64,000 nucleotides of DNA from Eutreptiella sp. 'Long Island Sound 2002' (Eukaryota; Protista; Euglenida), in NCBI GenBank assembly GCA_964036045.1, contig OZ038378.1:96348001-96412000 (forward strand), read 5' to 3'. This document shows, in pieces, positions 19,044-61,865 of the stretch. The first letter of the stretch is position 1. Each line of letters begins with the position of its first letter. A program made the position numbers and the translations under genes. Under the pieces are notes generated by a model. It made no database searches and had not been told where the DNA came from. It saw only the letters and a program-made list of their open reading frames with translations.

Positions 19044-19449
19044 TCACTCCCTTAGCCTGGATCAAGGGTCCAGCTCCTCGTCCACGAGGTCTTCCACCCT
19101 CATGGAGAGTAGGGGTTTCAGTGGGGCGACGTACTCGGCATTCTCCACCTCCTCCACACAGGTCTGCACGAAGAAGGCGTCGTGCTCAGTTTTGTCATCT
19201 GAGTGGATAGAGCTAGGTAGCTCAAATAGTCCACACTCAGAGACTCCATCAGGAACAGGTACATGACAGGGAGAGTTGGGGGTGTTGGTGTCAGTCACGA
19301 CGTACTCATCTCCTTCGGGTGTAGTCTCAACAGCATCTTGAGGTCGTAGGCGATCCTTCAAGTCACCCAAGGCGAGTCCGTCGGTTTCTCGTTGTATAGC
19401 CTGGAACAGAGTCGGGTCCAGATCCTCCGAGGAGATGGAGGTAAGACCT

Positions 19450-19870
19450 CCGTCCACCACGCTCAGCATACTCCCCCATCCGGTTTTCCCAATAGGCGTC
19501 TTACGACCCAGAGGCACGTAGATGGCCTCATCAGGTAACCGAACAGAGCTGATAGTCAGCCTGTCCAGGAGGTTTTGCCAGTATTTGTTGCCCCCATGGG
19601 CTCCCCAATCGGGGGAACACAGGACCATACGGGAACGTTCCAAGGCCACTTTGGTCAGCACCTTCCCCAGCTCACTGAACCTGGGGTTCCCGTAGGCCAT
19701 CCCGAAAGAGGGCCAGTAAAATTTTCTAGCTGCAGTTCTTCCCCTTGCTGCAGTAAAGGTCCAGTGCATGCTGCTTGTCGCTGGCGAACACCTCCACACT
19801 CAGGTCTTCTCGAGAGTAACCCAACTCCTTCAGACCTTGGTCTAGGACTTCCTTGAATAGTTGATAGTCC
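19450..19870 (-). pseudogene. Dam-like (DIRS-type MT) N6-adenine methyltransferase domain within pol
   Basis: Joined reading VEVFASDKQHALDLYCSKGKNCS/KFYWPSFGMAYGNPRFSELGKVLTKVALERSRMVLCSPDWGAHGGNKYWQNLL follows the DIRS MT/phage Dam pattern DLFAS..N..L..YCS...F.W...Y.NPPFS....VL.K....ILVAP.W...W..L. Broken by a TAG and a +1 shift at 19721-19728. Confidence 0.8.
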
Positions 19871-20325
19871 TCAGTTTTGGAGGCCGCCATCATGTTCCAG
19901 GGCTCCTCCTTCGATAGCCTCAGGTAACTCGAGGTATGTTCTGACTGCTCCAGTGGCACAGACTCTTTGCACTGCCGTGGTCCACGTAGAGGAGGTAGGG
20001 GTTGTATCTGCGAGTGCTGTACGAAGAAGTCAGTCCCCAGTACAAAGTCGAAGGCCTCAGTGTCCATCACATAGAACCGATGGGCGATAGTCCGGGAGCC
20101 CATAGGTACCTCCACTTCACAGTTCCCGCAGCTGTGCACCACATGTCCATCCCCCATGCGTATAGCAGCGGTGGTCATGGTGTTCTTCAGGCTCCCACAA
20201 GGTAACATTTTCTTGGCCACTATAGATATGGTGGCGCCAGTGTCCAATACCCCCAGGTATTCGCGTCCCCCTAGTCGGATACGTACCCAAAACACCAGGT
20301 CTTGGGTGCCACCGGAGCGTCCCCG
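19870..20325 (-). pseudogene. pol: Retropepsin-type aspartic protease domain of pol
   Basis: LGVLDTGATISIV active site and FDFVLGTDF; in frame with gag after a single TGA. Confidence 0.9.
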
Positions 20326-23655: not shown

Positions 23656-26600
23656 GATGTCACACTATACAGGTTTGTACTTCTGAGGTCCAGTGTGAAC
23701 CAATATTGAAGTACTGATCGTTCCCTAGGGAGAAATGAGAAGCCATACCAAAGCAACCGCAGATTGTTTTACCATACCCAAACCCGCCTGTCTCCATGTA
23801 CATGCGACTATACCTATGGTCCAGCCCCGACCGGTACCTACGTACAGATTGACTATGCAAAGAATTGTGGTGGTCTTGTGAGGGGAATGAGCATGTGACT
23901 GCCATGACTGACACTGTGACTGAGATCTTCGAGGCGCCAGGCTGATTGCCCAGTTTCTCTGAAGTGAACTCCCAGCAATCCGCCACTGTCAGTCCCAGTG
24001 TGAGCCCACTGAGTTGCCTCGGCAGTTTGTTGGCGGGCTGCAGTGTCCTGACTTCGGTCAATCTACCCCGGAAACTGATTGTTTGAGGAGTCAGCGCCTC
24101 CGTCCGAACAGCCTCCGGACTCCTCCATCCATGGTCCTCGTGGTAATAGGCCGAGGGAGATGACAGTCTTGATGGCCGTTGCCTGATTGAGAAGCTCGTG
24201 CGGCTGTACCACTCTGGACTCGCCTCGTGAATATGGACATGGACACCCCTGGGAATGGTCGGCCCATATCTCTGGCTCAGAGGCCGGTCAGGACGAGCCA
24301 TCCAAGGAGCATAGGGAAGGACTGAGAGTTGACCCTGGAAGGCATTGATTCCTGTGAACTCGCCCAAAGGTGATCAGAACGCCCCTCCCCTGGCAGGGTT
24401 CCAGCGTCATTTCCGGACAGATCTGTGGTAATTGTTCCAGCCCCCTTAATCGATGCCACCAGGGAGTTGGAAGCTGGGATTGGGAAATTCTTTGTGACTG
24501 AGTGTCTATTGCCTTGAGGCGCTTTACCCGAGTCAGTGCCCTATCCCGCCTGTCCAGTACATATCCTGATGTGTTGTTGTACATACTTTTGCTTTTTCAG
24601 ATAGTAGGAAGGATCGTAGAACGCTTTGTTCTATGACGACGCCTTTGGGGGCAGTGCTTTCCCTGCCTGCCTGCTTGTGTGTGTGTCCAAGCAACAAGGC
24701 CCCCCATGGTAACGTATCAGTATTAAAGCGTTGGCCGATTACTGACAGTTTCCTGATTCCATGGGACGTTCACATGTGCCCCATGCTTCCTGTAAGAGGA
24801 GAAATGACTCCATTTCTCGCATGTTGTTGAAGACTGGTCTCTAAGCTGACCAAGGGTGTCTTGTTCCCTTCATCCAACTGTGGATATAGAGCTGCAGCCA
24901 TATTCACTTGTTGTCCCCGTGTCCTTCTCAGGAGTGTGGCTCTTATGACCTTTGCCTCTTTTACCCTTGTGCTATTCGGCTTTGAATGAATTCGGTCTGA
25001 AGTTACCTTAATGGCCTGAGTTGACCTGTACATCAAAGAGTCTAAGTTGCAATACACCGAGGATCAGTATACGATTGAGTCTGGATTTCATGCCTTCATC
25101 TTCCCTAAGGGAACGGTGCAAAGGAACTGCAACAGTTCACCTGATAGCAGCCCGTTTTGCCCCCTCTCCACAAGAGCCTAGATAGGTTTTGGAGTGGATA
25201 ATCAAAACCTTGTGAGACTCACGTCAAAGAAAGCGGAAGAAGGTTGTTGGTACACGCTAGTGCAACGGATTTTGTTATAACACTCAAACGGTGTATTCTG
25301 CTTTCGTGCCCGCCCAGTCGCTGCCTTCTCGCTTAACCTGGACGAACTGTTGAATGTCAAGGACAATGCATTTTCTTTCTATTGGAGCCCGGTGCTTAAA
25401 CATCACCAGAAGCAACACCCCGGCTATATGGGATCGTTCGTAGACTACTTGATTGGATTTCAGAGTCTGCAAAGGATTTGAAATTGCCTCTGTTTTGCTT
25501 TGCTTTGCTCATTCGCACTGTCCTTTACCCTGTTTTCTGAGCCTTTGAGGTCACTCAACACCATTTTGAGGCAACCACAGCTTTTTATGTGGCGAGTGCT
25601 TCAGAAAATTCCATTTCTATTTTATCAACACGACATTCTCCTTTGAGCGCAGTTGTGCTATTTTTGATAGCGAATTTCTATTTGGAGAACGTCAGCCTGT
25701 GGCCCCTAATTTGCGACTACGCAAAATCCAAGACCATGCAACAAGTTTGCCTGTCGCAATTCTGAAGTCGGTTGTCCCTCCACATTCCCTCAAGTTAAAG
25801 CTCCCAGTTTTATGGCTTCTGGTAAAAAAGGTAGCAAATTTCTGTGGCCTGCAATGCTGACACGTTGTAAGGTTGGACGAATCCGTGGACACGCGCAGCA
25901 ACACAATGGCAGCGGCCTTTGCTGTCTGCTCTTCCTCCTGTGCTCCTCCAGGCCAAGTTGGCTGCACAGAAAAAGGTTTTGGTTTGAATCCCTCTCGATT
26001 CGAAAAATAGTTTTTTGTGTTTCATTTCATCACGATTGGGTACGTTGTTTTTTGGGTCGCAGAGAAACCAGTGATAGTGCTTCGGGTCAACAAAACGATA
26101 GGATTGATATTTTTGTCCTTTTAGGTGTTATCTTGTTTGCACCTTATAACTAGGTTGGGCATGGTACATGCTCCCAAGGATTAACAAGCAGCGAGCATAC
26201 TGCTTCACGGATTCCTGGACCCGGGATATGATCTAGAGAGGGGGGTCACACATATCCCATGCACTCTCTGTTGGATGGCTTTGTGTCTCACGGGGTCCAA
26301 TGTCATCTCGGAAACGGGTTCCTCGTTTTATGCCGTGTGCCACTCGGAAGCCAATCAGCGGACAAGTTTTGTTCCTGTTGCTTTAATGCAATTTTGGGCA
26401 TAAAATTTAAGGTACTTCAGTATGGAACCGCCTGTGAGTCAACAAGATACGTATTTATCCTGGACGGCTCAAGTTGCAAGGTCAAAATCTGCCAAAACGT
26501 GCCTGTATGCACAACTCAGGAAAAATAGTTTTTTTTGGGGACCCTAAAACAAAGAGACATGAAAACAAGCGAAAAATTGATTACTTCGACCGTTTTGATT

Positions 26601-27771
26601 TATTTTTTAGAAACGGGACTGCCCCTGAAAATAATTTATCTACCTAAAATTGCACTGGTTTTGTTTGGAAAACCATGGCTTTTCCTTTCATTTACCACTT
26701 ATGCTTTCATATGAAAATACCCATTAGGTAGCAATCCCTTCGAAAACCAGTTTTTGAAATCCGAGCTGCACACAGCACAACAAGAAGCATTTTTTAAAAC
26801 ACTTGGTTGCGCGAGGCCTCGCGCAAACATAAGCACAACAGCACAATAAAATGCATCACAGGGAGAAATGTGCCGCACAAAGTGACATCAAAAAGGTCGT
26901 CGAAGGGGAGTGCATAGCGCGAGCCCACGCACATAATATATCAGAACAAGCGAAGAAATTACCTTTTGTTCGGAGCAGCTTGCAGCTTAACACCCATAGA
27001 CTTAGGAACGGACGTCTTACCCTTTGGCGGTGGCTTTGCCGGCTGGACTCTTGGTTGGGACTGACGAGCTGGCTGCTTGACTGAAAGTATAACCCGGCTC
27101 TCCTCAGACCCTGGTCTCACTGCCGCTTTCCTCGCTGTCTTGCCTTGGTAGACCTGCGGTTCTCCTCCTCTTCTTCTTCGCTCTCCTCCCCCTCATCCCC
27201 ATCGCTCTCGTCAGTATCTTCACCGGTACCCGATTTTGCTGCCTGAGGCTTGGAAGCAGTCTTCTTCCTCTTGGGGGCAGGTTCCTCATCAGTTGACTTC
27301 CGCTTGGCTGCCGCGGCCTGTGCTTCTGCAGCTTGACCCTACTGAACAATCTCTTCCTCCTTCAGCTCGCACGCATAGGAACGCAACTTTTGATCCCGAA
27401 CCCAAAGGAGCAATACCACGGTTTGTCCAGTTGGCCTGCTGGTCCGAATCACCAGACTCGTCCAGCTTCCACCCCTGTGTCAAGACGTGGTTCAGCTGAT
27501 TCTGCACTCTGTTGACTTAATCAGAGAGACTCTTGGTGGACACACCAAGAAGGTACATGCAAGAACCCGGCTCCATGGCAGCAATCTTTGACATCAGGTC
27601 TAGTTGATGATCGATGAACGCAAAAGCAGACCTGAATCCCTTAGTCTCCTTCAGGTGATGGAGGTGAGTATCGAAATACCACATAAAATGCCTTATCGGC
27701 AGGGGGCCGCCAAAATCGGTGTCTACAGTCTCCCGTACTTGAGTAGGTCCAAACCATAGATAATTTGGAAT

Positions 27772-27838
27772 CTGCAAAGAGAGAGAAGTTATTGCGCGAG
27801 GCCTTGCGCAAGTAGTGGACGTAACGATGATTTTATAC
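27772..27838 (-). other. 67 nt GT-AG intron containing the 20 bp palindrome (27792-27811)
   Basis: AAA|GTATAA...TTGCGCAAGGCCTCGCGCAA...TTCTCTCTCTTTGCAG|ATT; removal fuses two ORF-track fragments in frame (WSRK-IPNY). Confidence 0.8.
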
Positions 27839-28959
27839 TTTTCTGCTCCAGCTGTCCGGTAACAAAACCAGCAACCAGCGAACGTCGAACAACGTAGGAT
27901 CCCTAGCTGCCTTGGGATTGGTTGGCCAACTGAAGATGGGAATATGCAACATGTTACCAATGCGCGACGCTTTGAGGTCATGGTTGAGGCGCCTCTCCGT
28001 CTCCGTGTCCAGAACGTCGTACATGTTGTCAACAGCAGTTTGAGATCCGCTGATAAGTGTATCAGCAAGCGCCATTTCTTCTTACAGCGAGGCCGGGCAC
28101 ATCGTCTCAGGATCAAGATGTTCAAATATATCACCGTTGCTGACAATCAGGTTCTTGTCAATCTCCAAGAACAGCCTCCGGGATTCGTGCACCAGAGCTG
28201 CAATTCGGGTCGCCTTAGTTGTGATAGTTTGACTTGCCAGCAATGGATCCTGCTTTTCCACTGTCTTGAAGTCACCAGTAAGGCCAGCAGCTGCGGGGAC
28301 CACACGGCGCTTGGTAACCTCTGTTCCCATGAGTCTTTGGACATTTAGGATTTTCGCAGGAACGGGTTTGCCCTTCTCTGCCACCTGCCATAGTGGTGCG
28401 CGCAACATGGATTTCCGCGCCCGCCATGAATCGCTACTTTTGCCTTCAGGTTCCCGCCAATAGGCCTATGTGCCAAGAGTCACCTTCAGGGTTTGCTTTC
28501 GAAGTGCAGCAACCTCTTTGCCGCTGTGCATGTCCTTGGCTACAGAACAGAAAAGGAGAAGGTGTTGTAGAAACACAACCTAGGCCTTATTGACGATATA
28601 TGGCTTTCTTAGGTCGGACGTACTGGCCTGTTCCAGGGTGGTCCAGATGCATTGAGACCCACAATTCAAGGATGATGGCGTTGAACGATTTCTGCAACGA
28701 CTTGAGTTTTTTTTCTTCTTCCTGCATCTTGGCTGCCACTTTCTTGTAGACCACCGGCAAGATGACACCCTCCAGTTTCTTTAGTGCGTTCTTCGACACT
28801 TTCTCCCTTTTGTCATGGAACGTTTGCAGACCTTCCACAGCATCCGGACCAACATAATAGGCAAACGTCATGATATCTTTCCACAATTTATACGTATTAT
28901 ACTGAAAATGCCAAGGTGATGCGCGAGGCCTCGCGCAACGAGCAGAGTCGAAGGAAAAC

Positions 28960-30350
28960 GTTAGGTAGGTAGGTAGGTATCTTCGAGAGCTCGGGATGCC
29001 TCCTTTGACATTGCAGGAAGAAGATCTTACCAAAGGGACATCCTGTCCCTCCCACTGCCCTATGTCAGGTGCCTCTTGAGCCGCTCCCGCATGTGCTTGG
29101 GAAGGCATTGTCGCGGCCACCCGGTCCATGTGTCCCACGTGGGAGGGTGTCCCCACATGTGTCCATGGGTAGGGCCACTTGCCCCCTCCTTTGGGCGGCA
29201 GCTCTGGGGGCTGCCGAGCCGTGTGGAGTATCTCTCACCACAAGGGGTATTGCTCCCGCTAGTCTACGGTACGACCGCCTCACCGTTGTGGCTTGAGTTG
29301 CGGGGCCACTCTGCTTGGCAGGCGACCCCCTCCTGGACTGTGTACCGCCTCGCCTGTCACCGGTTGCTTTTTTTGCACTGAACGGCGCCTTTTGTGGCTG
29401 GCCAGGCCGTTAGCAACCGGTGACAGGCCTGTCACCGGTTGCTTCCATGGCTCCAGGTGATGTTTGCCATGGTCCCCTATGCAGCCTGGCCGGGCTCGGA
29501 CCAGTGGCCTTGGAGTACCGCTCCTGCCACTGGCCCGGTGGGTCGGCTGGGTTGCCCCAGTTCGTCCGACCCATGGGGTGTTGGTTCTTTCCTGTCCCTC
29601 GGCCGCCCTACGTGTGTGCAGTGTCCATGGCCGCTTGGCTCCTGTTCACTGGTGTGCCCGCGTTGTTTGTTGTGTTGCGCCAGCGGTGTCCTGGGCCACT
29701 TGGCTCCCGTTCACTGGTGTGCCTGCTCGGTGTGGTGTGTTGCGTTCGCGGTGTCCCGGGCCACTTGGCTCCTGTTCACCGGTGCGCCCGCTCGGTGTGT
29801 TGCTTTGCGTGTGCGGTGTCCTGGGCCACTTGGCTCCTGTTCACCGGTGTGCCCGCTCGGTGTGTTGTGTTGCGTCTGCGGTGTCCTGGGCCACTTGGCT
29901 CCTGTTCACCGGTGTGCCCGATCGGTGTGTTGTCTTGCGTGTGCGGTGTCCTGGGCCACTTGGCTCCTGTTCACCGGTGTGCTCGCTCGGTGTGTTGTGT
30001 TGCGTGTGCGGTGTCCTGGACCACTTGGCTCCTGTTCTCCGGTGCGCCCGCTGGGTGTGTTGTAGTGTGTGCAGAGTCCTGGGCCACTTGGCTCCTGTTC
30101 ACCGGTGCGCCTGCTCGGTGTGTTGCTTTGCGTGTGCGGTGTCCTGGGCCACTTGGCTTCCTGTTCACTGGTGTGCCCGCTCCGTGGGTTGTGTTGTGCA
30201 TGCGGTGTCCTGGGCCACCTGGCTCCTGTTCACCGGTGTGCCCGCTCAGTGCGTTGTGTTGTGTGTGCGGTGTCCTGGGTCACTTGGCTCCTGTTCACCT
30301 GTGCGCCCGCTCGGTGTGTTGCTTCGCGTGTGCGGCGTCCTGGGCCCCTT
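28960..30350 (-). mobile_element. 1.39 kb non-LTR-type insertion (SINE-like or truncated LINE) with (ACCT)n tail
   Basis: Flanked by GGAAAAC at 28953-59 and 30351-57 (10/11 match if extended to GGAAAAC[G/T]TTA). (TAGG)4 at the left end, minisatellite at the right end. Removing it restores a 73 nt intron. Confidence 0.7.
29623..30347. repeat. 65 bp minisatellite, ~11 copies
   Basis: Unit gtcctgggccacttggctcctgttcaccggtgtgcccgctcggtgtgttgtgttgcgtgtgcggt starts at 29623, 29688, 29753, 29818, 29883, 29948, 30013, 30076, 30141, 30207, 30272 and 30337. Confidence 0.95.
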
Positions 30351-30736
30351 GGAAAACTTTAAATGAACATACAAATTAACCCGATTGCTTCAGTTCAGCA
30401 GTCGGAACAAGAGCACTCATCTGCACAGCATCCACAATAGCGATCTTCAGATTGCTGTACGTGTCAGGTAGGTTCTGCCGCCGCTGATCTTCAACACACC
30501 GAAGGAGGCTATCTGCCGCCTGTTACATTAAAATCGGCTCAACGTCCTGTGCGCTTCCTTGCGCTTGTCCCACCAGTTTTGTACAGAAGGCCCACGGTGA
30601 AATCAGGCTTCAAAATATCGGCCGTGCATGTGGTATGCCACTTGTACAAATCCAGACATGCTGCCCGTGGCTTCTCCCCAATCTTGAAAACTGCCCCCAA
30701 TGCTGTGCTGTTCAGATACACACCAATAACCACCAT

Positions 30737-30807
30737 CTGCAAATAGAAGACAGGTCCATGCGCGAGGGCTCGCGCAGCGAGAAAAACGAACAGTCCGTTG
30801 GAAACAC
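30737..30807 (-). other. 71 nt GT-AG intron containing the palindrome (30758-30777)
   Basis: AGT|GTGTTT...CTGCGCGAGCCCTCGCGCAT...TCTTCTATTTGCAG|ATG; in-frame join WEDNS-MVVIG. Confidence 0.75.
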
Positions 30808-31236
30808 ACTGTTGTCTTCCCAGAGAACGACTGGTATGGGGCCTGTTGGTCGTGCTGCTTCAAGTGACTCGATTCGGTTTTGCAGTAAATTTGCATCTTT
30901 GCGTCTGATCAGTCCTCTTGTCTTCTCTTGGTCGATGCTCACAATGTCCAGCTCAATCTCCACCTGCTTCCCATCCGGCTGCAGGTGGTCCTCGATGTCT
31001 GTACCCATTGTCAGGCCAGATATGGTGTTTCCTACTTCTTCCGCCCCTTCTTTAGCGTTCCAGTCTCCGATTCCAATTCTTCAGGGTCATGGTCGGTATC
31101 CACCAGTTCTTCACCTGTCTTTTTGGCGGGGCCTGCCATTCTGGGATAAGAACAGAGCCTGTTTCGCAAGAAACGAAGAACCGATGTGTGACCCATTTTT
31201 AGCGAAAACGGCTAAGGTATTGCTCAGAATGAAAGA

Positions 31237-31307
31237 CTGAGAGGTACCACAACGGTTTTTGTTAACAACCTTGCGCGAGACCTCGCGCAAGAGGGGGGTG
31301 TAATAAC
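31237..31307 (-). other. 71 nt GT-AG intron containing the palindrome (31271-31290)
   Basis: CAG|GTTATT...TTGCGCGAGGTCTCGCGCAA...CCTCTCAG|TCT; in-frame join GVKQQ-SFILS. Confidence 0.75.
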
Positions 31308-31483
31308 CTGTTGTTTCACGCCATTTGCGCGAGGCCTCTTGCGCCACTGCATGGTCTCCAATCTTCTTCGAACGTTCCGGATCGTGTCACCTTCTCTCTG
31401 CTCCTCCAACACACTGCGTTGGAGAATCAGCTCCGACAATTTTCTCTTAAAACCAGCATTAAGCGGCCCCTGCTGAATCAGCA

Positions 31484-31524
31484 CTAACGACATAGAAACA
31501 AGCACTTGTTTATAATGGTTACAC
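31484..31524 (-). other. 41 nt GT-AG intron without palindrome
   Basis: G|GTGTAA...CTATGTCGTTAG|TG; a phase-1 join leads into VLIQQGPLNAGFKRKL. Confidence 0.45.
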
Positions 31525-33420
31525 CCCTTTGAAATTAGAAGAGACGGTGGAAAGCTGGGTACACCCCTGCGTGGCTATTGTGCCTGGGTTGCACAAGTAG
31601 GCTCCGCGCACCACCAAACCCGAGGCACATACACGCGCTCTGCGTTGAAGTAAACGGTTAACCGCTGACACCCGGAATTGCCACAGGAATTAGGGATTTT
31701 GCAGACCTTCACCCTGTGACCTTCTTTCCGGATAATGATTGGATGGTACACATCTTCAACATCGTCAATGGTCACAGCAGCTCTGTTTTGTGTTTTTTTC
31801 GTTACAGGGCTGGAGAGCAGACTTTCACAACACTCCTCAACATAACCCTGTCCAGGCATAGCTGAGTGCCATGCAGTGTGGAATAATAGGGCAGTTGCAA
31901 CAGTGCGTTCGTAGTTTAAAAGTGTGCCCCCCATGTTCAAACGGTCCAAAGGACACATGACGATCTGCAATCCCCCAGAAGCAAAAACACCCGTGTTAGC
32001 AGTCTCACCGCCCCAATCGCACTGCCTTACGAGGTGTCCCAGGTATAGTAACATAGGACAGTATTGTGTTAACAGAACCTGCATGGCTTTACACACAGTG
32101 TATTGAAGACAACTTCGCCGATTGGCTGGACGTGCCAACCCAAGGGAGTGACATTTCCTGTTGAGGCGCCGTATTAGGGGGCCCATACCCAACAGCAGTG
32201 CACCAACGGTTATCTCCATTGTGATCAGCTTGGGAAAACAAGGGACAGTGTCACCGCTGCGCAACAAACCTTTACGGAAAAAGTCAACAATCAGCCAAAA
32301 TGAGCGAAATGTTTGTGTATCGCAAAATTTGTATGCGTGCCAGAAACCATATAATATACGCTGTGACCGCAAAAAAAGCCAGACAATCCAGCCCGTTTTA
32401 TTTTCACCATACATCATCTTACAAATGTCGTAATGGATGTTCCCGTCACATAAACAGGCACAACTGGAGGAGTGTGTTGCGCCACGTCCCTAGTGATTTG
32501 CAGTAGGTTAAGAAGCGATATGTTGCTGCTTACCTTTTCTTGGCTTAGACAGACGGGCCGCCAATGCCATCTCTTGGCAGGCACTGGGCATATAATGTCA
32601 AGCGGTGCCCAGATGTTTCGCACAACAGGCTGCGTGCTTGCAAATCCCAGATCACGCAGGATACATGCAAAAGTTCCCTCCCTGTTCCCCAGCATGCGCG
32701 CAACAACAGGGACACGCCGTTCAGACTCTTCCAGGATAGGATGACCATGCCAGTAGGGTGGTGCATCCCGTAGTAGCAAGACAGCCAACGCTGTTGCGTT
32801 AAAGCTCTTGTCGTTCTTGTCACGGTTTTTGGTAAATTGTTTGTTGTACCAGTTGTCCATCAACAACACAACCCACCGCTGGTGTATTTTGTTCCATGTA
32901 CTCTGTAACCTGACTGCGGCCCCTTCCTTCACTGAAGGTGCGCTGTATCACGCCAGACCGGACCTTGCTGTAATGCGCCGCTGCGCCCTACTTCCCTCTA
33001 TCGCAATAACACATTTTGGTTTTCCCTGGTACGGAACTGCGCAGTGGCGCATCTGTAAATAAAGGCGCCAGGCCTCTTCCATCAAAACAGCAACCCACCT
33101 CATGCCCTCAGCCACGATTGCCTTTTCAACACTGCAACGCGTCCGTTCAATTTGGCGCAGACGCAGAAAAAACACAAACATCAATTACCTGCCCTCGTCC
33201 CCCTGTTTTAGTCCTTCCTACAATTCTTCTGCCGTGTGATACGGCGGTTCCTCTGAGCAGACATCGCGGAATACTCCAGATGCTGCGGCCACTGTCTTCT
33301 CAAGGTCCGACACTCTTCGCAGGGGCATTGTTACTGTGAAATAGATTGCGTGAATGTATCTTCCTAAAAATTGCTGTTCCAAAAAGTTTCCTGCTTGAAA
33401 CATCAACATGTCACACAGTT
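31500..33420 (-). pseudogene. Putative DDE-type transposase core, frameshifted
   Basis: RWVVLLMDNWY (32846-60); VYV(D)GNIHYDICKMMYG after repairing a 1 nt shift near 32440; LYGFWHAYKF; LLFHTAWHSAMPGQGYVEECCESLLS. The D..D..GxWH..HxxxH..E layout and its position between TIRs suggest an RNase-H-fold transposase; superfamily uncertain. Confidence 0.6.
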
Positions 33421-33973
33421 TTCGCGCGACGAAATGTTCAATGATTTGTTGGTCGCATGCACCATTTTCCTTTTACTGTAACTGCCTGGTGGTCCCAGAT
33501 TTAACTGGTTAGGCCTAACTGTGGTACCCAGCTGCGGCGCGCTACCATCGCTGTTGGGCAGTGAAGTTGGCGGTGACGACAGTATGAAAACTAGAGATGC
33601 CGGCAGGACCCGCACTGGCGCCCAAGCGGCAGCGCCAAATCAAAGGAAAAATACATGCTGTGTAGTTGGTGGATCTGTCCATTATCTGTTTCTATGCGTG
33701 CTCATAACTTCCGAGGCCTCGCGCAAACATCAGTAAAAACTGAATGTTTGTCATGCACCATTCCGTGCGCGAGGCCCCGCGCATGAAACTACAGTTTGTT
33801 TCGGGAGATTTATACATTTCAAGATTCACAGGTGTAGCGATGTCGAGATTTATTCATTAAGACATCCATTTTTATCACTCGATCGTGATAATGTTACAAA
33901 GTTACGTGTATAAATACGATGGGTTTCTCTCTTCCGACGACCTGCCAAATGCGTTTCGCTGTAGTACATGAAT

Positions 33974-34033
33974 CTGACACAAATGAACGGCTTTGAGCAA
34001 GGCCTCGCGCAAGGAATGGACACAAAACAATAC
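33974..34033 (-). other. 60 nt GT-AG intron containing the palindrome (33993-34012)
   Basis: AAG|GTATTG...TTGCGCGAGGCCTTGCTCAA...TTTGTGTCAG|ATT; phase-1 join gives MTRNMGDIWKDSCTTAKRIW. Confidence 0.65.
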
Positions 34034-36169
34034 CTTTCCATATATCACCCATGTTCCGTGTCATTTCTACAACAATATCTATTTCATTGCACTGATTTGC
34101 GACGGTCCAGACATGTCCATCAAAATAATTATTATTTGATGCTCTCGGAAACCTGTCGTTTTGCTACCTTTTTTGTTGTTTTTGACCCTGCAACTTGAGC
34201 CGCCTAAGTTCATGGTCTCAAGCAGTTCTGTGGAGGCCTGTCTTTGCGTGTGTGCTCGTCTGGTGCTCATGTTGCGTGTGCGTGCTCTCTGTTGTTCGTC
34301 CACTCCATTAATACACGCCGAGCAACTGTAATATCTTCTGAACGGGTGTTAATAGTGTTTTAACTCTATAGTGTTGCCAAAAAGGACGCGAATCGGAAGC
34401 AAGGGCGACCCCCAGTTGATGATAGAGGGCCCGGAATGGAGATCTGCTCAAACCCTGGTGCGGTGCCTCCGCCAACACCAGCGAAGGCCGCAAGAAGGAA
34501 TGGTACACGTTCATTGGAGCATTTGTTTAAGTATTCGCCACGCCTACGTGTATGGGAGAGCACGAGTCCCTTGAAACTCGGGAAGTCAGTGTAGAGGAGG
34601 AGTTGAATTGCAGGTGGTTGAGGCAGGCGCAGCAGAGCGGAAGGAAGCACATTGTGCATTGCTCTGCAAGTGAGTTTTTCTTCTTCTGCTCTGGTTATTC
34701 ACTTTGCAAAGTCACTCCCTGGAGTGTTCCCCACCCAACAGATGTATCCTTTGTTGCAACGGGCATCATCTTCTTTGAGTACGCACGAGACTATGAATCA
34801 ACGAACTGTGGTCTTGTACAGTAGCTCAATTGCTGCTTTATTTTCCTTGCAGCAACCTTGGAAAGCATGCTTCGGTGCTACACAATTTTCTCATTGGATG
34901 ATGCAATACATTTAGTTGCACGGTAACACACATTCAATTTCCTCATTCAAGTAACGTTTGCAAGAGTAGTGCTACACAGCTTTTTCATGTTTACTTCAGC
35001 ATGTCATGTTTTGGGTTCATTGCTTATTTCGTTGCTAAGAATGATTGCGTCACGACCGCATACCTCCAGGGTATGCGTGCCTGCTGCCTCTAACGATATT
35101 GCGAAACATTGTTGCGAGAATTAGAACGGCTTAAGTAGGAGACAGGATCTGCCCGTGCAGCTGAGAAATTCTTTACCGGAATGCTTCATTTTGCCCTATT
35201 ATTTTGCGCAATTATTTGGGGACCCTTGTCGCAGCAGGGCTGTGGCGCCGCGCAGCCTGGCAGCTCCCCAAACAGACACGTAATCAGTTGTAAGGAGAGG
35301 CCCTACAGACCTAAAATGAAAGCATTTTTATGCGGGAACCAAATTGCTGAATTACAAATAATACCAACAGGTTTCATTAGTTTGCGTTGCAAACATTGTG
35401 CCGTGCAATCTCCCTCTGGAAACTCTTCTTCGCGTCCACTGTGCGTCCAGGGCAATGTTTTGCATCACGTGCAAGCTAGGACACGGTTTTGCCCCACCTG
35501 CAGGACCCAATGCGGGGACCAAACCACAGCCAGCGAGCGGCACGCCGAAGACAAGGGTGCAGCGTGTGCACTGTCCTAATATGTGCCTGCCCATAGTGCG
35601 AAGACACACGAGGTTGGGGCAGCTGAGAGCTGTCGACTTGAAGCCGCTGCCCAGAGACCAACCGGGGGGGCGGCTGAGAAACCAAGAAAGGGAGCAGGCA
35701 AGAGACCAAGAGATGGTGTTGATGTTCAGGGAGCTGCTAAAGGGAGCATGCACTCAGCTCCCTGTCAAGCCAGCAAGTACTAAGCACCCACTGACTGTTC
35801 CTACAGGGCAGCGCAGCGTCCTGGACTTTCCAGCGACAAAAAGGTATGTTACAACTACCCGCCAGTTGATTCCCATGAGGAAGTACCTATTGGAACCCGC
35901 TCAGAAAACCTACAACTGCGATCGCTACAGCTGGCCAGGTAACAATCATAGTTCTGCCTACTTGCAACATCTTTGAATGAATTTGGTACATGACCAAGAT
36001 GAGCAGAAAAACCCTGGTGTTACAGTGCTGCACCACAGTGTTTCTAATCGTCTTCCACAGCTAATCGTAAACGTAGTTCCGGTGATGCTTGATTTTGTTG
36101 AAGCATAAGTGACATGCTCTTCCGCAGTTTCAACAAGGAAAAAGTCCAAGGGTCAGTCAAAGAGGACGC

Positions 36170-38100
36170 CAGTGGAAATACAAGATTTTGGACCTTCACC
36201 ATGACCGTGTTCAGATGAAGAAGGAAAACAACATCACGAATGCACTAGAGCTGATAGCAGACGTGTTTTCGAATTACCGGCAGTATGGTCTCTCGGGCGC
36301 AGCGACTGACTCACACGAAGACTCCCCGGCACAACTAATGACACCTGAAACGCCCATCAGTCACCCAGCCAAGAGCACAGCCTCGGCACCGGCACGGGCA
36401 CAAGGGCGCAACACCACTCCCCACCCCGCAACATCAGAGCCACAAGAGCCAACACTGGCTCGGACTCTGCGGGGGGCACACCGCCCGGCGGCCACGGCCA
36501 AACCGACTGCCGCGACGACTACGCAGGTAGTCACCAGCACAACAGACAACACGCCACCGGGGCCACATGGCCCGGGGACCCAACCGGAGGCCCAGGCTCC
36601 GGACAACACAGGTGCGCTATCCACACCACCCCCCAGCCCACAACGGGACGACCCCATGGGGAACACTGAGGCCGGACCCCGGGGAGACGCGGGAAGGCGA
36701 CAGCCGCAGAAGACTGGAAGCGCGGCGCGCCAAACTCATGGCCCCCATGTCCTTGGCGGAAATGGATAGGATGGACAGAGATCTGGTACACTACAACACG
36801 GACGAGGAGCTGGATCTGAGGAGATTTGGGATGGGACCGCCGGGGACCATGGGGGTCAGTATTTGCCAACACGACATTGATGCGGGGAGAACTGATGAGG
36901 GGAACCTCAGCAACCAACTTCTGAGACACACGCAGGGGAGCCCACTGGCATCGCCCACCCACCACCATCCACAACGATGGATGCAGACGCCCGCAGCGGC
37001 GCCGCGGCGGACCCAGGCCCCAACACCCAGGCACCACCCGCAACCTCCACGGGAACGGCGGTCACAGCGGAGGAAGCACCCTGTCCGCAGGCCACACACC
37101 CGCCAGAAGAGGAGACGTGCACCGTCTGGGCACCAAGGGGCACCGGACACACTGATGCAGGGGGACAGGGCACCGCGCGCACCTGCAGCGGCCCCCGGCC
37201 GTATTGCACGCGGAGCAGGCCGTGGCAGCCACTGACGGCGCGCACCCACCACAATCTGCAGTTGCTGGATAATGTGTACACCCTGGTACAGCCAGGAGCC
37301 AGGCAATCCACCGCCCGGGGCCCCAGAGACAGAGGACATCCTGCCATCCATCTTCAACGCCGCCGCACCAGCAGCAGATTAAGGACCGCAAGCAGACGAG
37401 CACCACCGGGACGATGAGTCTTTCGCCGTCTTCATGGCATCCTGTCGGTACGGGGCCCCAACCACGGGGCCAACAACCACATCCGCGCTGCGCTGCGTGT
37501 CGCACGACGGGGAGCCCACCAGCACTTCGCGGCATCCTGCCTCCGCATCCCATCAGGCGCATCCTCGCCGCAACTATGCCGCCTTGGGATCGGCGGCAGA
37601 AACCCACGCAACCACCGCGGGGGACGGTCAAGCAGGAACGCAGCCCGAGGGCGTGGCCAGTCAGCGCCCAGGCGCACAGGACGCCGGGATCTCTGGGGTC
37701 CGGGCAACAGCAGAGACCGGCAACGTCAGTGGACCGGTGGAGGGAATACCCTCATGAATGAACCAACCATTCGGACGGGGGAGCCTGGACTATGCACAAT
37801 CAAAAGGGGACGCCCAGCGCCCCACCATGGAGGCGCACCGCGCAGCAGCACTTGACCTGAACCTGTGGATCCCCCGGATCTTTGACGTGGAGCAGCCCAC
37901 CATCGAGATCCTCATGAACGTACACCACATCAGGACGGGCGCCCGCACCATTGCGGACGTCATTTTTGACCTGTGTGAAGGGCAACACTCCCCGCCCCCC
38001 ACCATGGAACATCCCGGCCAGTGGCGGCATGTGGCCACCCGCCTCATGGTCCGCATGGGACCTACATCCCAGATGACCTAAACCGGTTGCATTGACGGTG
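36170..38100 (+). pseudogene. C/A-rich low-complexity coding-like remnant, probably retroelement-derived
   Basis: Overlapping Thr/Pro/Gln-rich ORF pieces with more ordered segments (MSLAEMDRMDRDLVHYNTDEELDLRRFG; LDLNLWIPRIFDVEQPTIEILMNVHH). Composition mirrors the - strand of 4.7-7.8 kb. No diagnostic motif. Confidence 0.25.
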
Positions 38101-47003: not shown

Positions 47004-47459
47004 ATGTGGAACTTGTTGGCACTAAAACAGACAGGGGCGGACACCGCCCCCGTGCGACACTCTGTTTTGCATTTGTATATCTCCCTGCGCGATCGTAGGG
47101 TTGGTATCGACGGCATAAGGATTGAGCGTTTTTCTGGTGACTGCTTTAACCACGACAGTGACACACCCATACAACGCACATCTGGGGTGAGGGGGTTACA
47201 GTATATGACACGTGATGGCGAACTGCGACGCGTACCAGAATACGCCTACGTTCATATCAGTATTTCGACCAGTTTGGTTACGGGGTTGGTTTGTATGTGG
47301 GGGTATTACACAAAGACGGGTGAGTATCACATCGTCGAGGACGAAGCCGAGTTCTTCGAATTGGTGGATAGAGTGAATGATTGGCGTAGCATTCGGTCGA
47401 CCAAAAGCGTGTGTGCCGCTGCTGCAAACGACAACAGCAGCAACGGCGCTGGTGGATAG
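47004..47459 (+). CDS. Hypothetical ~150 aa protein repeated in each unit (also 41539-41928, 52995-53453; interrupted by the TIR insert in the last unit, remainder 60917-61192)
   Basis: GIDGIRIERF...GLQYMTRDGELRRVPEYAYVHIS...YHIVEDEAEFFELVDRV conserved in four copies. Confidence 0.45.
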   Translation: MWNLLALKQTGADTAPVRHSVLHLYISLRDRRVGIDGIRIERFSGDCFNHDSDTPIQRTSGVRGLQYMTRDGELRRVPEYAYVHISISTSLVTGLVCMWGYYTKTGEYHIVEDEAEFFELVDRVNDWRSIRSTKSVCAAAANDNSSNGAGG

Positions 47460-50740: not shown

Positions 50741-53700
50741 ATTGTTTCTGGTCCCTTACGCCAAGAGCTCCTGTGTCAGTGTTTACAATACCATACCAAC
50801 ATCAAAACCAAAAACGAGGAATCGTCAATCTTCAGATGTGACCTTGATACGGACTGTGAATGGAGCCACAGATTTTATACCTGTTGCATGGTCAGGATAC
50901 AACTTTGCAGTACTGTGACGCATAGGTACCCGCCTTTTTGCTTTTGCAGCACGACCTGGCAACAGACAACGAATACAACAAGCAAGGGTGTCAGATAGAT
51001 GACACGAGTTGAGTTATAGGACGGACAGCCTTATCGCGCCCACGCCCACAAGGGATCATCGGAATATACATATTATGGGTTAGAAGAAAGAAGAAAATAA
51101 GGGCCACGGCCTCGGCACAATTCTTCCCATATCACTTGCCTTGTATGTGATTTTGCATTGTGGGCTGGTACGAGAAGGGATATATATATATATAGTGTAG
51201 GTACCCTTACCCTACAGTCAGTACCCTACAGTACATGCGCGACATGTGTGCTTCTGTTTAGCGACATCCTGCTTTTTACTCTGCTTCTTTTGCTCGGTGA
51301 ACCCCTTCTTCTTTTGTTATACACGTTGCCTGACTGCTTCGTCCTATGGGCAAAAGCAGACACCCATCCCGTTGACCCATATAAAAGCGAGGCAAACCAC
51401 AGAAAAACCGAGTTCACACAACACAGTTGACTGATGTCATAAAATCACAGGAAAAAGGCGGATGAGGCGGACGAATGGGGCCGGTGGACCCCAACCCTGG
51501 CTTGGAGTCCGTGATTGCTAAATGCACTTGCTCGAGCAACCCTTTTACGACAAGTGAGTTACCCACACTGCACGCCACTTGGTCTATCCAATCAGGGCTT
51601 GCTCTACCATAGTCGAACGTGAGCTAACAGCCCTTTGGTATACAGCGGATTGCAGTGAAAAGAACAGCCTCCTTGGTGCGTTCAACTACGAGATTCGGCT
51701 GGCTGCTGTGGCTGATAAAGTACCAATGTGGCGTGCAGTTGGAACGAAGCATCATATTGTCATATACACCGGCCCATGGTCATCGTTGTGTATCACCCCC
51801 ATGTATCCAAGTCTGTGTGGGCGTCGTTAAGCCGTGCGCATCCTGACGAAAGACACAACTGGTTCACCGGTTTCATTTTGCGTGTGGCGAATACCCCATT
51901 TTCTTTGACACTTGACATTGTCCCATATTTCATTAGCGATACCCCGGCGCTCAGGCCTAGATCTCAGGCGGGTATCACCAGCTAGGACCGGGTCCATGTC
52001 TACTCCACAATGACGAGTATCATTTGCACCTGGTGCCACCTGGTACCATTTGCACCTGGAAATCTGTTATATGGTCCAGCCGGGGCGATTCATGAACTCA
52101 GGTATATTTGTCGCTGTTCTGTCGGCTTGTGGACGCCTCTGTAGCAAATGAAGTTTGAACGCGTAATACAAACATGTTGGTTGGCTTCAAACATGATGTA
52201 TCAATTGCTATCATTTTCAGAAAGGCCCTGCTGCAATCACATCACGCACAACAACACAGAATTCTGTTTCAGTGAAAGAATCGCAGCAATCAAACCCTGA
52301 TCCCGTATTTGACATTTTGCCACTGAGTGCAAGCTACTACCTAAAAAGCGAAGCGCAAATACTACTAAAACCTCATTGATCGCAGCAATGCATTTGTCAC
52401 TGGTCAGCTTTGATTGGTCTAAAACATTACACCACCCACCCTCCCATAATACAGGGGTGGGATATACTTTTCTTCGTACCATTTGGCACCATGAAAAAAA
52501 CAACATGCCCGGAAATTCCGTCTTCCTTCGACACAAGGAATGTCAGAAACACCAGATAAACCTACTCACGGCGTTGCGTGACTACAAGAAAATCGACAAT
52601 GGCGCATTTGTGCGCATGCTATCAAGCACTAGCATCGACACTGATCAGCATGTCATTCAAATGTTCGGGAGACTTCGCATACCCGAGTGGGTGCCCCAAT
52701 CCATGGCAATGTGTACAAGTAGGTGCGAATGGGATCGTGTCACCGAAATCATGGAAAACCAAGCGTTTCATTTCGATTTTGTCCTCGGTCTGCTACGGGA
52801 CCCATAGACCCGGACGACTGACCTATTGGCGGCCAAACAAGAAGAGAAAACAAAACATCTCTAAGCCGTAGGACATACAGTTACAACCACTATGACATGT
52901 TCGGCATAAGCCGAGGTTTAAAATGAACTCGTTTCACTACTGTGACAAACATGCAGGATTGGCATAGATATGAAACATTTGTGATGCGTGCCATATGTGG
53001 AACTTGTTGGCACTGAAACAGACAGGGGCTGACACCGCCCCCGTGCGACACTCTGCTTTGCATTTGTATATCTCCCTGCGCGATCGTAGCGTTGGTATCG
53101 ACGGCATAAGGATTGAGCGCTTTTGTGGGGACTGCTTTAACCACGACAGTGACACACCCATACAACGCACATCCGGGGTGATGGAGTTACAGTATATGAC
53201 ACGTGATGGCGAACTGCGACGCGTACCAGAATACGCCTACGTTCATATCAGTATTTCGACCGGTTTGGTTACGGGGTTGGTTTGTATGTGGGGGTATTAC
53301 ACAAAGACGGCCGAGTATCACATCGTTGAGGACGAAGCCGAGTTCTTCGAATTGGTGGATAGAGTGAATGATTGGCATAGCATTGGGTCGACCAAAAGCG
53401 TGTGTGCCGCTGCTGCAAACGACAACAGCAGCAACGGCGCTGGTGGATGGTGACGAGCTTGGGTAAGAATCAGTTACAATTGGAGTGTTGAAAAAGTAGG
53501 CATATCTACCTGGCTGCTGTATTTATGACCCATGACGGGCCACATGACGCCAAAGAACAGTGGAAGTCCCAACCTGCCACACAGGCAATCACAGGCGCAA
53601 ACAGCATCCCGTTGCCGCGCCACGAGAACGACAGAGAGGGTAATTGTAAGGTTCCCTACCATGGGCGGTCAATCAACTCACCTCTTCCCACCTGGATACC

Positions 53701-56734: not shown

Positions 56735-59042
56735 ATTGTGTCCGGTCCCTTACGCCAAGAGCTCCTGTGTCAGTGTTTACAATACCATACCAACATCAAA
56801 ACAAAATACGGGGAATCGTCAATCTTCAGATGTGAGCTTGATACGGACTGTGAATGGAGCCACAGATTTTATACCTGTTGCATGGTCAGGATACAACTTT
56901 GCAGTACTGTGACGCATAGGTACCCGCCTCTTTGCTTTTGCAGCACAACCCGGCAACAGACAACAAATACAACAAGCAAGGGTGTCAGATAGATGACACG
57001 AGTTGAGTTATAGGACGGACAGCCTTATCGCGCCCACGCCCACAGGTGATGATCGGTTATGGATCGATTATGGGTTAGAAGAAAGGAGAAAATAAGGGCC
57101 ACGGCCTCGGCACAATTTTTCCCATATCACTTGCCCCGTATGTGATTTTGCATTGTGGGCTGGTACGAGAAGGGATATATATATATATAGTGTAGGTACC
57201 CTTACCCTACAGTCAGTACCCTACAGTACATGCGCGACATGTGTGCTTCTGTTTAGCGACATCCTGCACTTTACTCTGCTTCTTTTGCTCGGTGAACCCC
57301 TTCTTCTTTTGTTATACACGTTGCCTGACTGCTTCGTCCTATGGGCAAAAGCAGACACCCATCCCGTTGACCCATATAAAAGCGAAGCAAACCAGGGAAA
57401 ACCCGAGTTCACACAACACAGTTGACTGATGTCATAAAATCACAGGAAAAGGGCGGATGAGGCGGACGAATGGGGCCGGTGGACCCGGACCCTGGCTTGG
57501 AGTCTGTGATTGCTAAATGCACTTGCTCAAGCAACCCTTTCACGAGAAGTGAGTTACCCACATTGCACGCCACTTTGTCTATCCAATCAGGGCTTGCTCT
57601 ACCATAGTCGAACGTGAGCTAACAGCCCTTTGGTATAAAGCGGATTGCAGTGAATACAACAGCCTCCTTGGTGCGTTCAACTACGAGATTCGGCTGGCTG
57701 CTGTGGCTGATAAAGTACCAATGTGGCGTGCAGTTTGAACGAAGCATCATATTGTCATATACACCACCCCATGGTCATCGTTGTGTATCACCTCCATGTA
57801 TCCAAGTCTGTGTGGGCGTCGTTAAGCCGTGCGCATCCTGACGAACGACACAACTGGTTCACCGGTTTCATTTTGCGTGTGGCGAATACCCCATTTTCTT
57901 TGACACTTGACATTGTCCCATATTTCATTAGCGATACCCCGGCGCTCAGGCCTAGATCTCAGGCCGGTATCACCAGCTAGGACCGGGTCCATGTCTACTC
58001 CACGATGACGTGTATCATTTGCACCTGGTGCCATAGTGGTTGTTACTTCTTTCACTTTCTATTTTGCAACACCTTCGTATTGGAAATCTCTTGTATGGTC
58101 CAGCCCAGGCGATTCATGAACTCAGGTATATTTGTCGCTGTTTTGTCGGCTTGTGGACGCCTCTGTAGCAAATGAAGTTTGAACGCGTAAGACAAACATG
58201 TTGGTTGGCTTCAAACATGATGTAACAATTGCTATCATTTTTAGAAAGGCCCTGCTGCAATCACATCACGCACAACAACACAGAATTCTGTTTCAGTGAA
58301 AGAATCGCAGCAATCAAACCCTGATCGTATTTGACATTTTGCCACTGAGTGCTAGCTACTACCTAAAAAGCGCAGCGCAAATACTACTAAAACCTCATTG
58401 ATCGCAGCAATGCATTTGTCACTGGTCAGCTTTGATTGGTCTAAAACATTACACCACCCACCCTCCCATAATACACGTGTGGGATATACCTTTTCTTCGT
58501 ACCATTTGGCACCATGAAAAAAACAACATGCCCGGAAATTCTGTTCTCCTTCGACACAAGGAATGTCAGAAACACCAGATAAACCTACTCACAGCGTTGC
58601 GTGACTACAAGAAAATCGACAATGGCGCATTTGTGCGCATGCTATCAAGCACTAACATCGACACCGATCAGCATGTCATTCAGATGTTCGAGAGACTTCG
58701 CATACCCGAGTGGGTGCTGCAATCCATGGCAATGTGTACAAGTAGGTGCGAATGGGATCGTGTCACCGAAATTATGGAAAACCAAGCGTTCCATTTCGAT
58801 ATTGTCCTCGGTTTCCTACGGGACCCGTAGACCCGGACGACTGACCTATTGGCGGCCATACAAGAAGGGAAACCAAAATATCCTTAAGCCGTAGGAAATA
58901 CGTACAGTTACAACCACTATGACATGTCGGCATAAGCCGAGGTTTAGAATGAACTCGTTTCACTACTGTGACAAACATGCCGGATTGGCATAGATACGAA
59001 ACATACGTGATGCGTGCCATATGTGGAACTTGTTGGCACTGA

Positions 59043-60749
59043 CCTAGGCGGCTCAAGTTGCATGGTCAAAATCACACCAAATGCACCCAATTTGGAAAAT
59101 GCACAAAAATAGTTTTTCAAAGGCTCTGTTTTTTGAAAACAGAATATTAGTCCAAAGAAAGTATCTTTCTTACCATTTGTGCCATTTCGTGCCTTTTTTC
59201 GGACAGCCAAAAACAAAAAGAAACTATAAAAATAATAAATAAATCTTATGATTTCAGTGGAAAATGATGTGCTTTTAGCGAAAATTGGCCAAGAAATACA
59301 TTTTGCGTTTGCCTTGTTTTTTGGATGAACATGGTCTGCAGAAAAAATGATTGCAACATCATTTTCCGTCCTGCATGTTCATTGCATACCTGGAAAAATG
59401 ATTTGTTGATCGAATTCTATGCGCGAGGCCTCGCGCAATCAAGACCAAGGATCATTAAAACAGAAGCATGGCGGATTAAATATCAATGCAAAGCATATGC
59501 AACATGTGGTTCAAGGGCTGCCCCATGCACGAGGCCTCGCGCATAACTTACTAAACCAAAAACCTCACCCGATTGGCTTTCCTTTGGAAAGACGGCTTCA
59601 GGATCGAGTGGTCTTAGTACGCACCCCATGGTTTGATTTTGGATTTGCACTGCCTGAAAAAGAGGTATAGGTTGTGACTTTCAAGTTCTGGAACTGCATT
59701 GCAGTCCTCATTGCGCGAGGCCTTGCGCAAAAAAAGGCCCAGAAAATATATTCTTTGTACCATTGTGATGGGTTCCCATCTGATAGCGCTTGTGCACAAC
59801 CTTCACTGAAGCAACGAGTACCTAAATTGTCGTTGAGTCATTGAAATTTAGCACAAGCTTGCCCCCCCCGGAGGCGAAAAAACTCTTTTTCGGCTTGGTC
59901 AGCCCCTGCGCTTGACAGACTGCTTCCCCCAGGGCACCTTCTTTCTCCAGGTATCGAACATCATCTTGATAATTGGTGTCCTTTGCACTACATTAGATTT
60001 TACTCTCTAAAAAATTAGTTTTTTTGGCCCAAACAAACGCTCAAAAAAGCGCCACGCATGGCAAATTCATATTTTCTTTGCACATTTTAGTTTGATCTAT
60101 AGTCAACAACAGAAGGATCAATTTTCCTTCAGCCAAAGCTACAAGGGGGGTTTCTGTCCAGCTCAGCGTCATCTGTTGAGTGGGAATGCTTCATGTGTTA
60201 CCACTGATACTCTTTTTTTTGCTTGACACTCCCCATAAGTTGTGGCAGGTGTGCATCATGAGCAATGCTAAAGGATGCACCCTGTGCAACACCTCCAACG
60301 TATGTGCTCCTTTTGTTAGGAATGCAACAACATTTGAAATGCTTTTCTGAGTCATCAATTAGTTTTCCAAGGCTTGTTTAGAGCACTGAATGTCTGCCCG
60401 CGTAAACATATTGTACAATGTGATCAAGTCAAGGGTGCCTGTAATGTCACTCCAGTGTAGGTGCCTGCTTGATTCCTCACTTCTACCATCATTACCTGAC
60501 TTCGGAGGGGCAAGGGAGTGCTCCTTGCGCGAGGCCTCGCGCAAGGAACAGTCCATTGCCCCAAAGAAAGCATTTTCTGGACCCATCAGGACCAAGAAAA
60601 GGCCAAATTCCTTACATAAGAGTTCTTCTGGTGTTCCAAAAACGGCTTGATTTTTTGCAAGCCAAAGAATGGTTCTTTTGATGTTTTTTCAGGCTGTGTA
60701 TTTTGGGCACTTTCTGTCGTTTTATACCATGCAACTTGAGCCGCCTAAG
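59043..60749. mobile_element. 1707 bp non-autonomous TIR element of the same family as 26459-34208
   Basis: TIR C[C/T]TAGGCGGCTCAAGTTGCATGGT (23/24). Perfect TSD ACTGA at 59038-42 and 60750-54. Sister units show the empty site ggcactgaaacagac. Palindromes at 59419, 59525, 59711 and 60525. Confidence 0.95.
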
Positions 60750-61865
60750 ACTGAAACAGACAGGGGCTGACACCGCCCCCGTGCGACACTCTGTTTTGGA
60801 ATTGATATATCCTCCTGCGAGATCGTAGGGTTGGCATCGACGGGATAAGGATTGAGCGCTTTTGTGGGGACCGCTTTAACCACGACAGTGACAAACCCAT
60901 ACAACGCACATCCGGGGTGAGGGGGTTACAGTATATGACACGTGATGGCGAACTGCGACGCGTACCAGAATACGCCTACGTTCATATCAGTAGTTTGCCC
61001 GGTTTGGTTACGGGGTTGGTTCGTATGTGGGGGTATTACACAAAGAGGGGTGAGTATCACATCGTCGAGGACGAAGCCGAGTTCTTCGAATTGGTGGATA
61101 GAGTGAAGGATTGGCGTAGCATTGGGTGGATCAAAAGCGTGTGTGCCGCTGCTGCAAACGACAACAGCAGCAACAGCGCTGGTGGATGGTGACGAGCTTA
61201 CGTAATACTCAGTTTCAATTGGAGTGTTGAAAAAGAAGGCATATCTACCCGGGTGCTGTATTTATGACCCATGACGGGCCACATGACGCCAAAAAACAGT
61301 GAAAGTCCCAACCTGCCACACAGGCAATCACAGGCGCAAACAGCATCCCGTTGCCGCGCCACGAGAACGACAGAGAGGGTAATCGTAAGGTTCCCTACCA
61401 TGGGTGCTCAATAAACTCACCTCTATCCAACTGGATACCACGCATTCGAACCGCCTTTCTATTTTGCAACGCCCTTGTGTTGAACATCTGTTTCATGGCC
61501 CAGCCCGCGCGCACCATGAACCCGTTTACCGCACATTTGGCACAGTTCAATAACCACCCACGACAGACAAACATCAAATCACGTGTCATATTGGTTGGCT
61601 CGAACCGCGTTGTAACAATTGCTATCATGTTTAATGAAGCCCTGCTGATTGCGTAGAATGTCAATCCCACCACGTGCCACAACACAGAAATCCGTTTCAG
61701 CAAATGAATTGCAGTAATCAAACTCTGACCGTATCTAACATGTTACACTGGGTGCCAGCTAATCCCCAAAAGGCGCAACACTAATACTACTAAGACCTCA
61801 TCCATTGCTGCCATGTATTTGTCAATGGTCAGCCCGGGATGGACAATGTATGTTGCAAAACAGCA

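Follow-up and report, generated by a model that had tools for sequence, protein, structure and literature searches.

The 64,000-nucleotide (nt) stretch analysed here, referred to as the window, lies on contig OZ038378.1 of the Eutreptiella sp. 'Long Island Sound 2002' assembly GCA_964036045.1 (positions 96,348,001 to 96,412,000, forward strand) and contains two related elements bounded by terminal inverted repeats (TIRs). The larger, copy A, occupies positions 26459-34208 (7750 base pairs (bp)) and carries on its minus strand the remains of two predicted genes (open reading frames (ORFs)): ORF1, for a putative transposase of the DDE (Asp-Asp-Glu) type, and ORF2, which is predicted to have five exons (Table 1). 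The smaller, copy B (59043-60749, 1707 bp), is a non-autonomous relative of copy A. Copy A is dead, and it probably represents the decayed remains of an autonomous two-gene cut-and-paste transposon whose DDE transposase falls outside the families tested and whose second gene encodes a partner protein.

The element boundaries are marked by an 18-nt TIR core, which occurs four times in the window (0.02 expected) and in every case exactly at one of the four ends of copies A and B. The 29-bp TIRs pair at 25/29 positions in copy A and at 26/29 in copy B, which bears out a preliminary description of the locus as a large transposon with TIRs of ~29 bp. That description had also proposed a 5-bp target-site duplication (TSD), perfect in the copy near 59 kb; copy B is indeed flanked by ACTGA on both sides, and the flanks of copy A, TTTAT and TTCAT, agree at four of five bases. 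Joining the left flank of copy B, one ACTGA and its right flank gives the 25-mer predicted for the unoccupied site. This 25-mer occurs unchanged at 41479-41503 and at 53002-53026, and a version differing at one base occupies 47011-47035. All three lie in paralogous tandem units, which makes them genuine empty sites and sets the TSD length at exactly 5 bp. The combination of TIRs, a TSD of fixed length and empty sites is the hallmark of class II, subclass 1 (cut-and-paste) transposons. Across the loci we fetched, the terminal motif CTNNGGCGGCNCAA is present solely at element ends, including both ends of a distant lineage described below, and the termini read CT..AG. A recombination signal sequence-like (heptamer/nonamer) reading of the TIR was ruled out: both spacing and sequence misfit, and the A-rich part differs from end to end.

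Further copies were abundant in one dataset. When the largest open frame was used for a word search, 210 proteins were returned, all unnamed; the four that were traced all belong to one ENA assembly (ERZ25074135), which is metagenome-style and eukaryotic. Word searches found nothing beyond the copies from this assembly, which holds >200 of them. Its complete elements L002 (6321 bp), L003 (6396 bp) and L004 (6323 bp) are, together with copy A, 81-95% identical to one another. Tabulating TSDs over further copies, as the preliminary description had suggested, gave perfect 5-bp duplications in all three (GCATG, GGCGA and ACATA, respectively). The usual length of an autonomous copy is ~6.3 kb; the extra length of copy A comes from a 1.4-kb insertion of its own in ORF2 intron 2. 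Half of this insertion is a tandem array (65 bp x 11.4) that matches neither the rest of the window nor L001-L004. At the protein level, the family forms clusters of 146 members (the 90% cluster of P0280, an intact ORF1 product) and 277 members. In another locus, L001, a GC-rich tandem repeat of ~9 kb (1-8900) takes the place expected for the first third of a further copy, of which only the 3' TIR is left.

A more distant lineage is represented by L006, a metagenome scaffold of 6637 bp that looks like a whole element. Its 23-bp inverted ends (58-80 and 6562-6584) contain the same core motif, and between them lie an ORF1 with 29% identity to that of the copy A family, an ORF2 in several pieces and a 16-bp GC-rich palindrome of its own (at 121, 3174 and 5007). 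The five-base repeat in its flanks matches at only 4/5 positions, and the 5-bp rule is therefore established for the family of this genome only.

In intact copies, ORF1 is a single uninterrupted exon of 1986 nt encoding 661 amino acids (P0280). The copy A version is interrupted by one frameshift and by in-frame stops, has lost its stop codon and is also altered at conserved residues. An exhaustive HMMER search of metagenomes identified 760 cluster representatives related to ORF1 (E<=1e-3); lengths of 650-840 amino acids and identities of 23-35% are common among them. All 30 relatives that were sampled derive from environmental data (ENA, Logan or JGI); they are unnamed or labelled 'hypothetical protein', and none of the 30 has an NCBI or UniRef record or name. 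No relatives of the ORF1 family were found in viral and prokaryotic genome collections. Known families were equally silent: Pfam gave no match for the ORFs of the window, intact ORFs, ORF2 pieces or 38 diverse ORF1 relatives; NCBIfam gave none for P0280 or any ORF2 piece; and PDB sequences were matched neither by sequence nor by family profile at E<=10. As the preliminary description had supposed, then, the element lies outside the described families in the sense that no protein family in these three databases claims ORF1, and judged against them the family is probably new.

A profile search for related loci in metagenomes yielded five short contigs lacking element ends. One family contig comes from sediment, and many distant ORF1 relatives (P0151, P0155, P0158, P0166 and others) nearly fill contigs of 2.2-2.6 kb; such small contigs would fit transcripts of a stand-alone ORF1.

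The fold of ORF1 was assessed by structure prediction. AlphaFold supplied with copies from the same genome only gave a predicted local distance difference test score (pLDDT) of 31, and with a diverse alignment a pLDDT of 88.5 and a predicted template modelling score (pTM) of 0.88. In the latter model, the order of elements (b1-b2-b3-a1-b4-a2-b5) is that of an RNase H core. Seven acidic residues are 92-100% conserved in the family alignment (D71, D157, D208, E285, E411, E412 and E415, L002 numbering). The model places D71 on beta-1, D208 directly past beta-4 and the Glu pair at the start of a helix after ~150 residues of helices, and conserved acidic residues at such places (beta-1, past beta-4 and a later helix) of an RNase H-like fold are the hallmark of DDE transposases. 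The candidate catalytic triad is likely D158, D295 and E498/E499 in P0280 numbering. ORF1 is thus predicted to have an RNase H-like core split by an all-alpha insertion, the structural class of the P element, hAT and Transib/RAG1 enzymes. In a Foldseek comparison with the PDB, the top match was the P element transposase (6p5a, E 6e-4, prob 1.0), followed by Hermes, HzTransib and RAG1; unrelated folds entered only at E>0.1, mixed with more Transib, RAG1, Hermes and ISCth4 transposase chains. The RNase H fold that the preliminary description expected is therefore present in the model, and its DDE-like transposase stands; the intron-rich structure that it assigned to the gene does not, given the single exon of the intact copies.

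Among known superfamilies, the Drosophila P element (6p5a, 6pe2) is the best structural match. Both it and the ORF1 family belong to TIR cut-and-paste elements, and in both a large insertion domain divides the RNase H core. However, P and THAP9 Pfam models did not match ORF1, and no THAP domain was detected. The P element makes TSDs of 7-8 bp, compared with 5 bp here, and, unlike in the P element, the ORF1 insertion is all-helical with no sign of a GTP-binding domain detected, and a second gene is present.

ORF1 also falls in the fold class of the hAT transposase Hermes, whose chains occupy Foldseek ranks 3-9, and this raises the possibility of a very divergent hAT element. The ends of hAT elements follow a YARNG pattern, which the ends described here misfit. 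By TSD length the family fits hAT, whose TSDs are 8 bp or, in hAT5-7, 5-7 bp, but only in the hAT5 subgroup, which makes 5-bp TSDs (PMC12730594). Pfam hAT domains matched none of the 38 members at E<=1, and no Hermes sequence was found by family profile at E<=10. Given also that the P element ranks above Hermes, that termini differ and that the element contains internal palindromes as well as a second gene, we regard membership in hAT5 as quite unlikely.

The same fold class includes Transib and RAG1, with which the family shares the 5-bp TSD and the long spacing of the first two Asp residues (136 residues apart). HzTransib and RAG1 both appear among the Foldseek matches, at lower ranks and with a weaker structural score than P and Hermes. 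Elements of the CACTA-Mirage-Chapaev-Transib clade are characterised by two motifs, C(2)C and H(3-4)H, by TSDs of 2-5 bp and, for the most part, by CA..TG termini (PMC12730594). The TSD length here fits, but the termini are CT..AG rather than CA..TG, although the latter holds 'in most cases' only (PMC12730594). The conserved Cys and His residues in the family alignment are limited to H244 (97%) and C350 (79%), with no C(2)C or H(3-4)H pairs, and RAG1 was not matched in Pfam. A deep branch of this clade closest to Transib thus seems very unlikely.

The preliminary description had seen in the motif layout, including HxxxH, a kinship with Academ/DUF6589-like and RAG1-like transposases. This is not supported: HxxxH is private to the family of this genome and is not kept among relatives, the DUF6589 and RAG1 Pfam models matched neither ORF1 (at E up to 10) nor the 38 members (at E up to 1), and the P element, then Hermes, is structurally nearer. 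Academ, here judged by the DUF6589 model, makes TSDs of 3-4 bp as opposed to 5 bp. For Kyakuja-Dileera-Zisupton (KDZ) elements, which have TSDs of 7-8 bp (PMC12730594), the transposase model had no Pfam match, and again the TSD here is 5 bp. With no match to hAT, P, RAG1, KDZ or DUF6589, with CT..AG termini and without Cys/His pairs, TSD length is therefore the sole feature among these that is shared with Transib or hAT5. The Academ-like layout just mentioned would favour a described superfamily without a Pfam model or solved structure, such as Academ, Kolobok, Novosib, Sola, Dada or a recent addition. None of those named is known to make 5-bp TSDs, and together with the silence of DUF6589 and the lack of an NCBI or UniRef record or name for any (0/30) of the sampled relatives, this makes such an assignment unlikely.

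Downstream of ORF1, past a spacer of ~235 nt, ORF2 starts at its own ATG, a start kept in three lineages. It comprises five exons and four introns, the latter 67-74 nt long with GT..AG ends in L003. The preliminary description had assigned ~5.6 kb of multi-exon coding sequence to one transposase. The coding sequence is present, as are the peptide motifs listed in that description, on the minus strand, but it is predicted to form two genes, and the acidic tail lies in the last exon of ORF2 and not in the transposase. In L006, the first three (N-terminal) exons of ORF2 are collinear and 24-33% identical. Because this collinearity persists despite ORF1 being only 29% identical, ORF2 appears to be a conserved partner gene, separate from the transposase. 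A short motif in exon 2 is found in three lineages (an aromatic residue, W, two residues, S/G, G, Q, H), which we take to recall ParB/DndB-type motifs; hidden Markov model (HMM) and PDB searches gave no support, and it is offered as a lead only.

As ORF2 is as conserved as ORF1, one might suppose that ORF1 was captured or is a passenger, with ORF2 or a protein supplied in trans as the actual transposase. Searches of Pfam, NCBIfam and PDB, run exon by exon, found no match to nuclease or recombinase models for any ORF2 piece, whereas the model of ORF1 shows the RNase H fold, in which conserved acidic residues occupy the canonical positions, and we consider a passenger role for ORF1 highly improbable.

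A further feature of the family is a GC-rich palindrome of 16-20 bp, GCGCGAGGCCTCGCGC, with ~10 occurrences per autonomous copy and four in copy B (starting at 59421, 59527, 59713 and 60527). Beyond the TIRs and these palindromes, copy B has nothing in common with the autonomous element. All 38 palindrome hits in 150 kb fall inside elements; the flanks, 115 kb in total, have none (p 6e-25). They are placed near element ends, in the intergenic spacer and in introns 1, 2 and 4, where they lie ~25-30 nt upstream of the acceptor site. L006 has its own palindrome in the same style and in matching places. Independent mini-insertions are an unlikely origin, as none was found outside an element. The palindrome is most likely a cis-acting protein-binding site. 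CACTA/En-Spm, PIF/Harbinger and MuDR elements likewise combine a transposase with an accessory gene and keep short repeated non-coding motifs in non-autonomous copies. The resemblance is one of layout: no sequence relation to these groups was found for either protein, and, unlike in them, the motif here is a perfect palindrome that is kept in accessory-gene introns as well.

Overall, we favour a decayed autonomous two-gene transposon as the interpretation of copy A. In the proposed mechanism, the ORF1 protein would bind the 29-bp TIRs and then excise the element, which would reinsert via cuts staggered by 5 bp; ORF2 would act as its conserved five-exon partner gene, and the scattered palindromes may serve as cis-acting sites for protein binding. 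Some observations weigh against this interpretation. D244 and E372 are conserved equally to the proposed triad. Template modelling (TM) scores to solved transposases are low (0.21-0.43), which places ORF1 in a structural class and not in a family. In addition, the family is set apart by comparison with Pfam, NCBIfam and PDB, and it may belong to a described superfamily that has no Pfam model. We found no description of this transposon family in the literature.

Table 1 Features of copies A and B in the window.
Feature	Position	Strand	Basis or remark
TSD left, copy A, TTTAT	26454..26458		4/5 bases as in right TSD
TIR, gene-distal end of copy A, 29 bp	26459..26487	-	25/29 versus other end
Eight 16-bp palindromes, copy A	26809..34010		starts 26809, 27794, 28921, 30760, 31273, 31327, 33767, 33995; all non-coding
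ORF2 exon 5 (predicted), acidic run and basic tail	26959..27771	-	copy comparison
ORF2 intron 4 (predicted), GT..AG, contains palindrome	27772..27838	-	copy comparison
ORF2 exon 4 (predicted)	27839..28539	-	copy comparison
ORF2 intron 3 (predicted)	28540..28603	-	donor mutated in copy A
ORF2 exon 3 (predicted)	28604..28901	-	copy comparison
ORF2 intron 2 (predicted)	28902..30372	-	1471 bp versus 71 bp in L003; insertion private to copy A
Tandem array, 65 bp x 11.4	29614..30352		inside intron 2 insertion of copy A
ORF2 exon 2 (predicted), short motif kept in three lineages	30373..30736	-	copy comparison
ORF2 intron 1 (predicted), GT..AG, contains palindrome	30737..30809	-	copy comparison
ORF2 exon 1 (predicted), own ATG	30810..31139	-	copy comparison
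ORF1, putative DDE transposase gene, single exon	31344..33328	-	one frameshift, in-frame stops, lost stop codon in copy A
Catalytic Glu candidates, E498/E499 of P0280	31833..31838	-	start of helix following alpha-helical insertion
Second catalytic Asp candidate, D295 of P0280, just past beta-4	32445..32447	-	alignment and model
First catalytic Asp candidate, D158 of P0280, strand beta-1	32855..32857	-	alignment and model
TIR, gene-proximal end of copy A	34180..34208	-	TIR-core match and pairing
TSD right, copy A, TTCAT	34209..34213		flank comparison
Copy B empty site, paralogous tandem unit	53002..53026		others at 41479-41503, 47011-47035
TSD left, copy B, ACTGA	59038..59042		flank comparison
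Copy B, non-autonomous	59043..60749		TIRs and four palindromes in common with autonomous element
TSD right, copy B, ACTGA	60750..60754		flank comparison

The remainder of the window is rich in other repeats. An LTR (long terminal repeat)-retrotransposon coding region (15412-22830, minus strand) encodes an aspartyl protease, reverse transcriptase, RNase H and an integrase with a zinc-binding domain, and includes a gag-like ORF without a Pfam match. The region from ~38000 to 64000 holds a tandem array of at least four units, each 5.5-6.0 kb long, which are 88-98% identical. Every unit contains one ORF with collagen repeats (49132-50310, for example) and another that is small and membrane-like, and copy B sits in the last unit. 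In blocks at 1-8000 and 36000-38000, GC content is 61-67%, GC and AT skew are both strong, and both strands read as long spurious ORFs. Searches of Rfam, for tRNAs and for dinoflagellate spliced leaders gave no match.

Somewhat more tentatively, the family could represent an undescribed superfamily of eukaryotic cut-and-paste transposons, branching next to P, hAT and Transib/RAG and widely distributed across environmental metagenomes. The hallmarks of such a superfamily would be a CT..GGCGGC..CAA terminus, 5-bp TSDs, a dedicated partner protein and, as a cis-element, a palindrome present even in the introns of the partner gene. New DDE superfamilies are rare, and each adds a branch to the tree that holds the RAG1, P and hAT enzymes. 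The 760 metagenome protein clusters without a name are an annotation gap to fill. With intact and abundant copies, clear ends and a confident structural model, the family is directly testable at the bench, and its element-specific palindromes and conserved partner gene provide a testable case of a transposon marking its own DNA.

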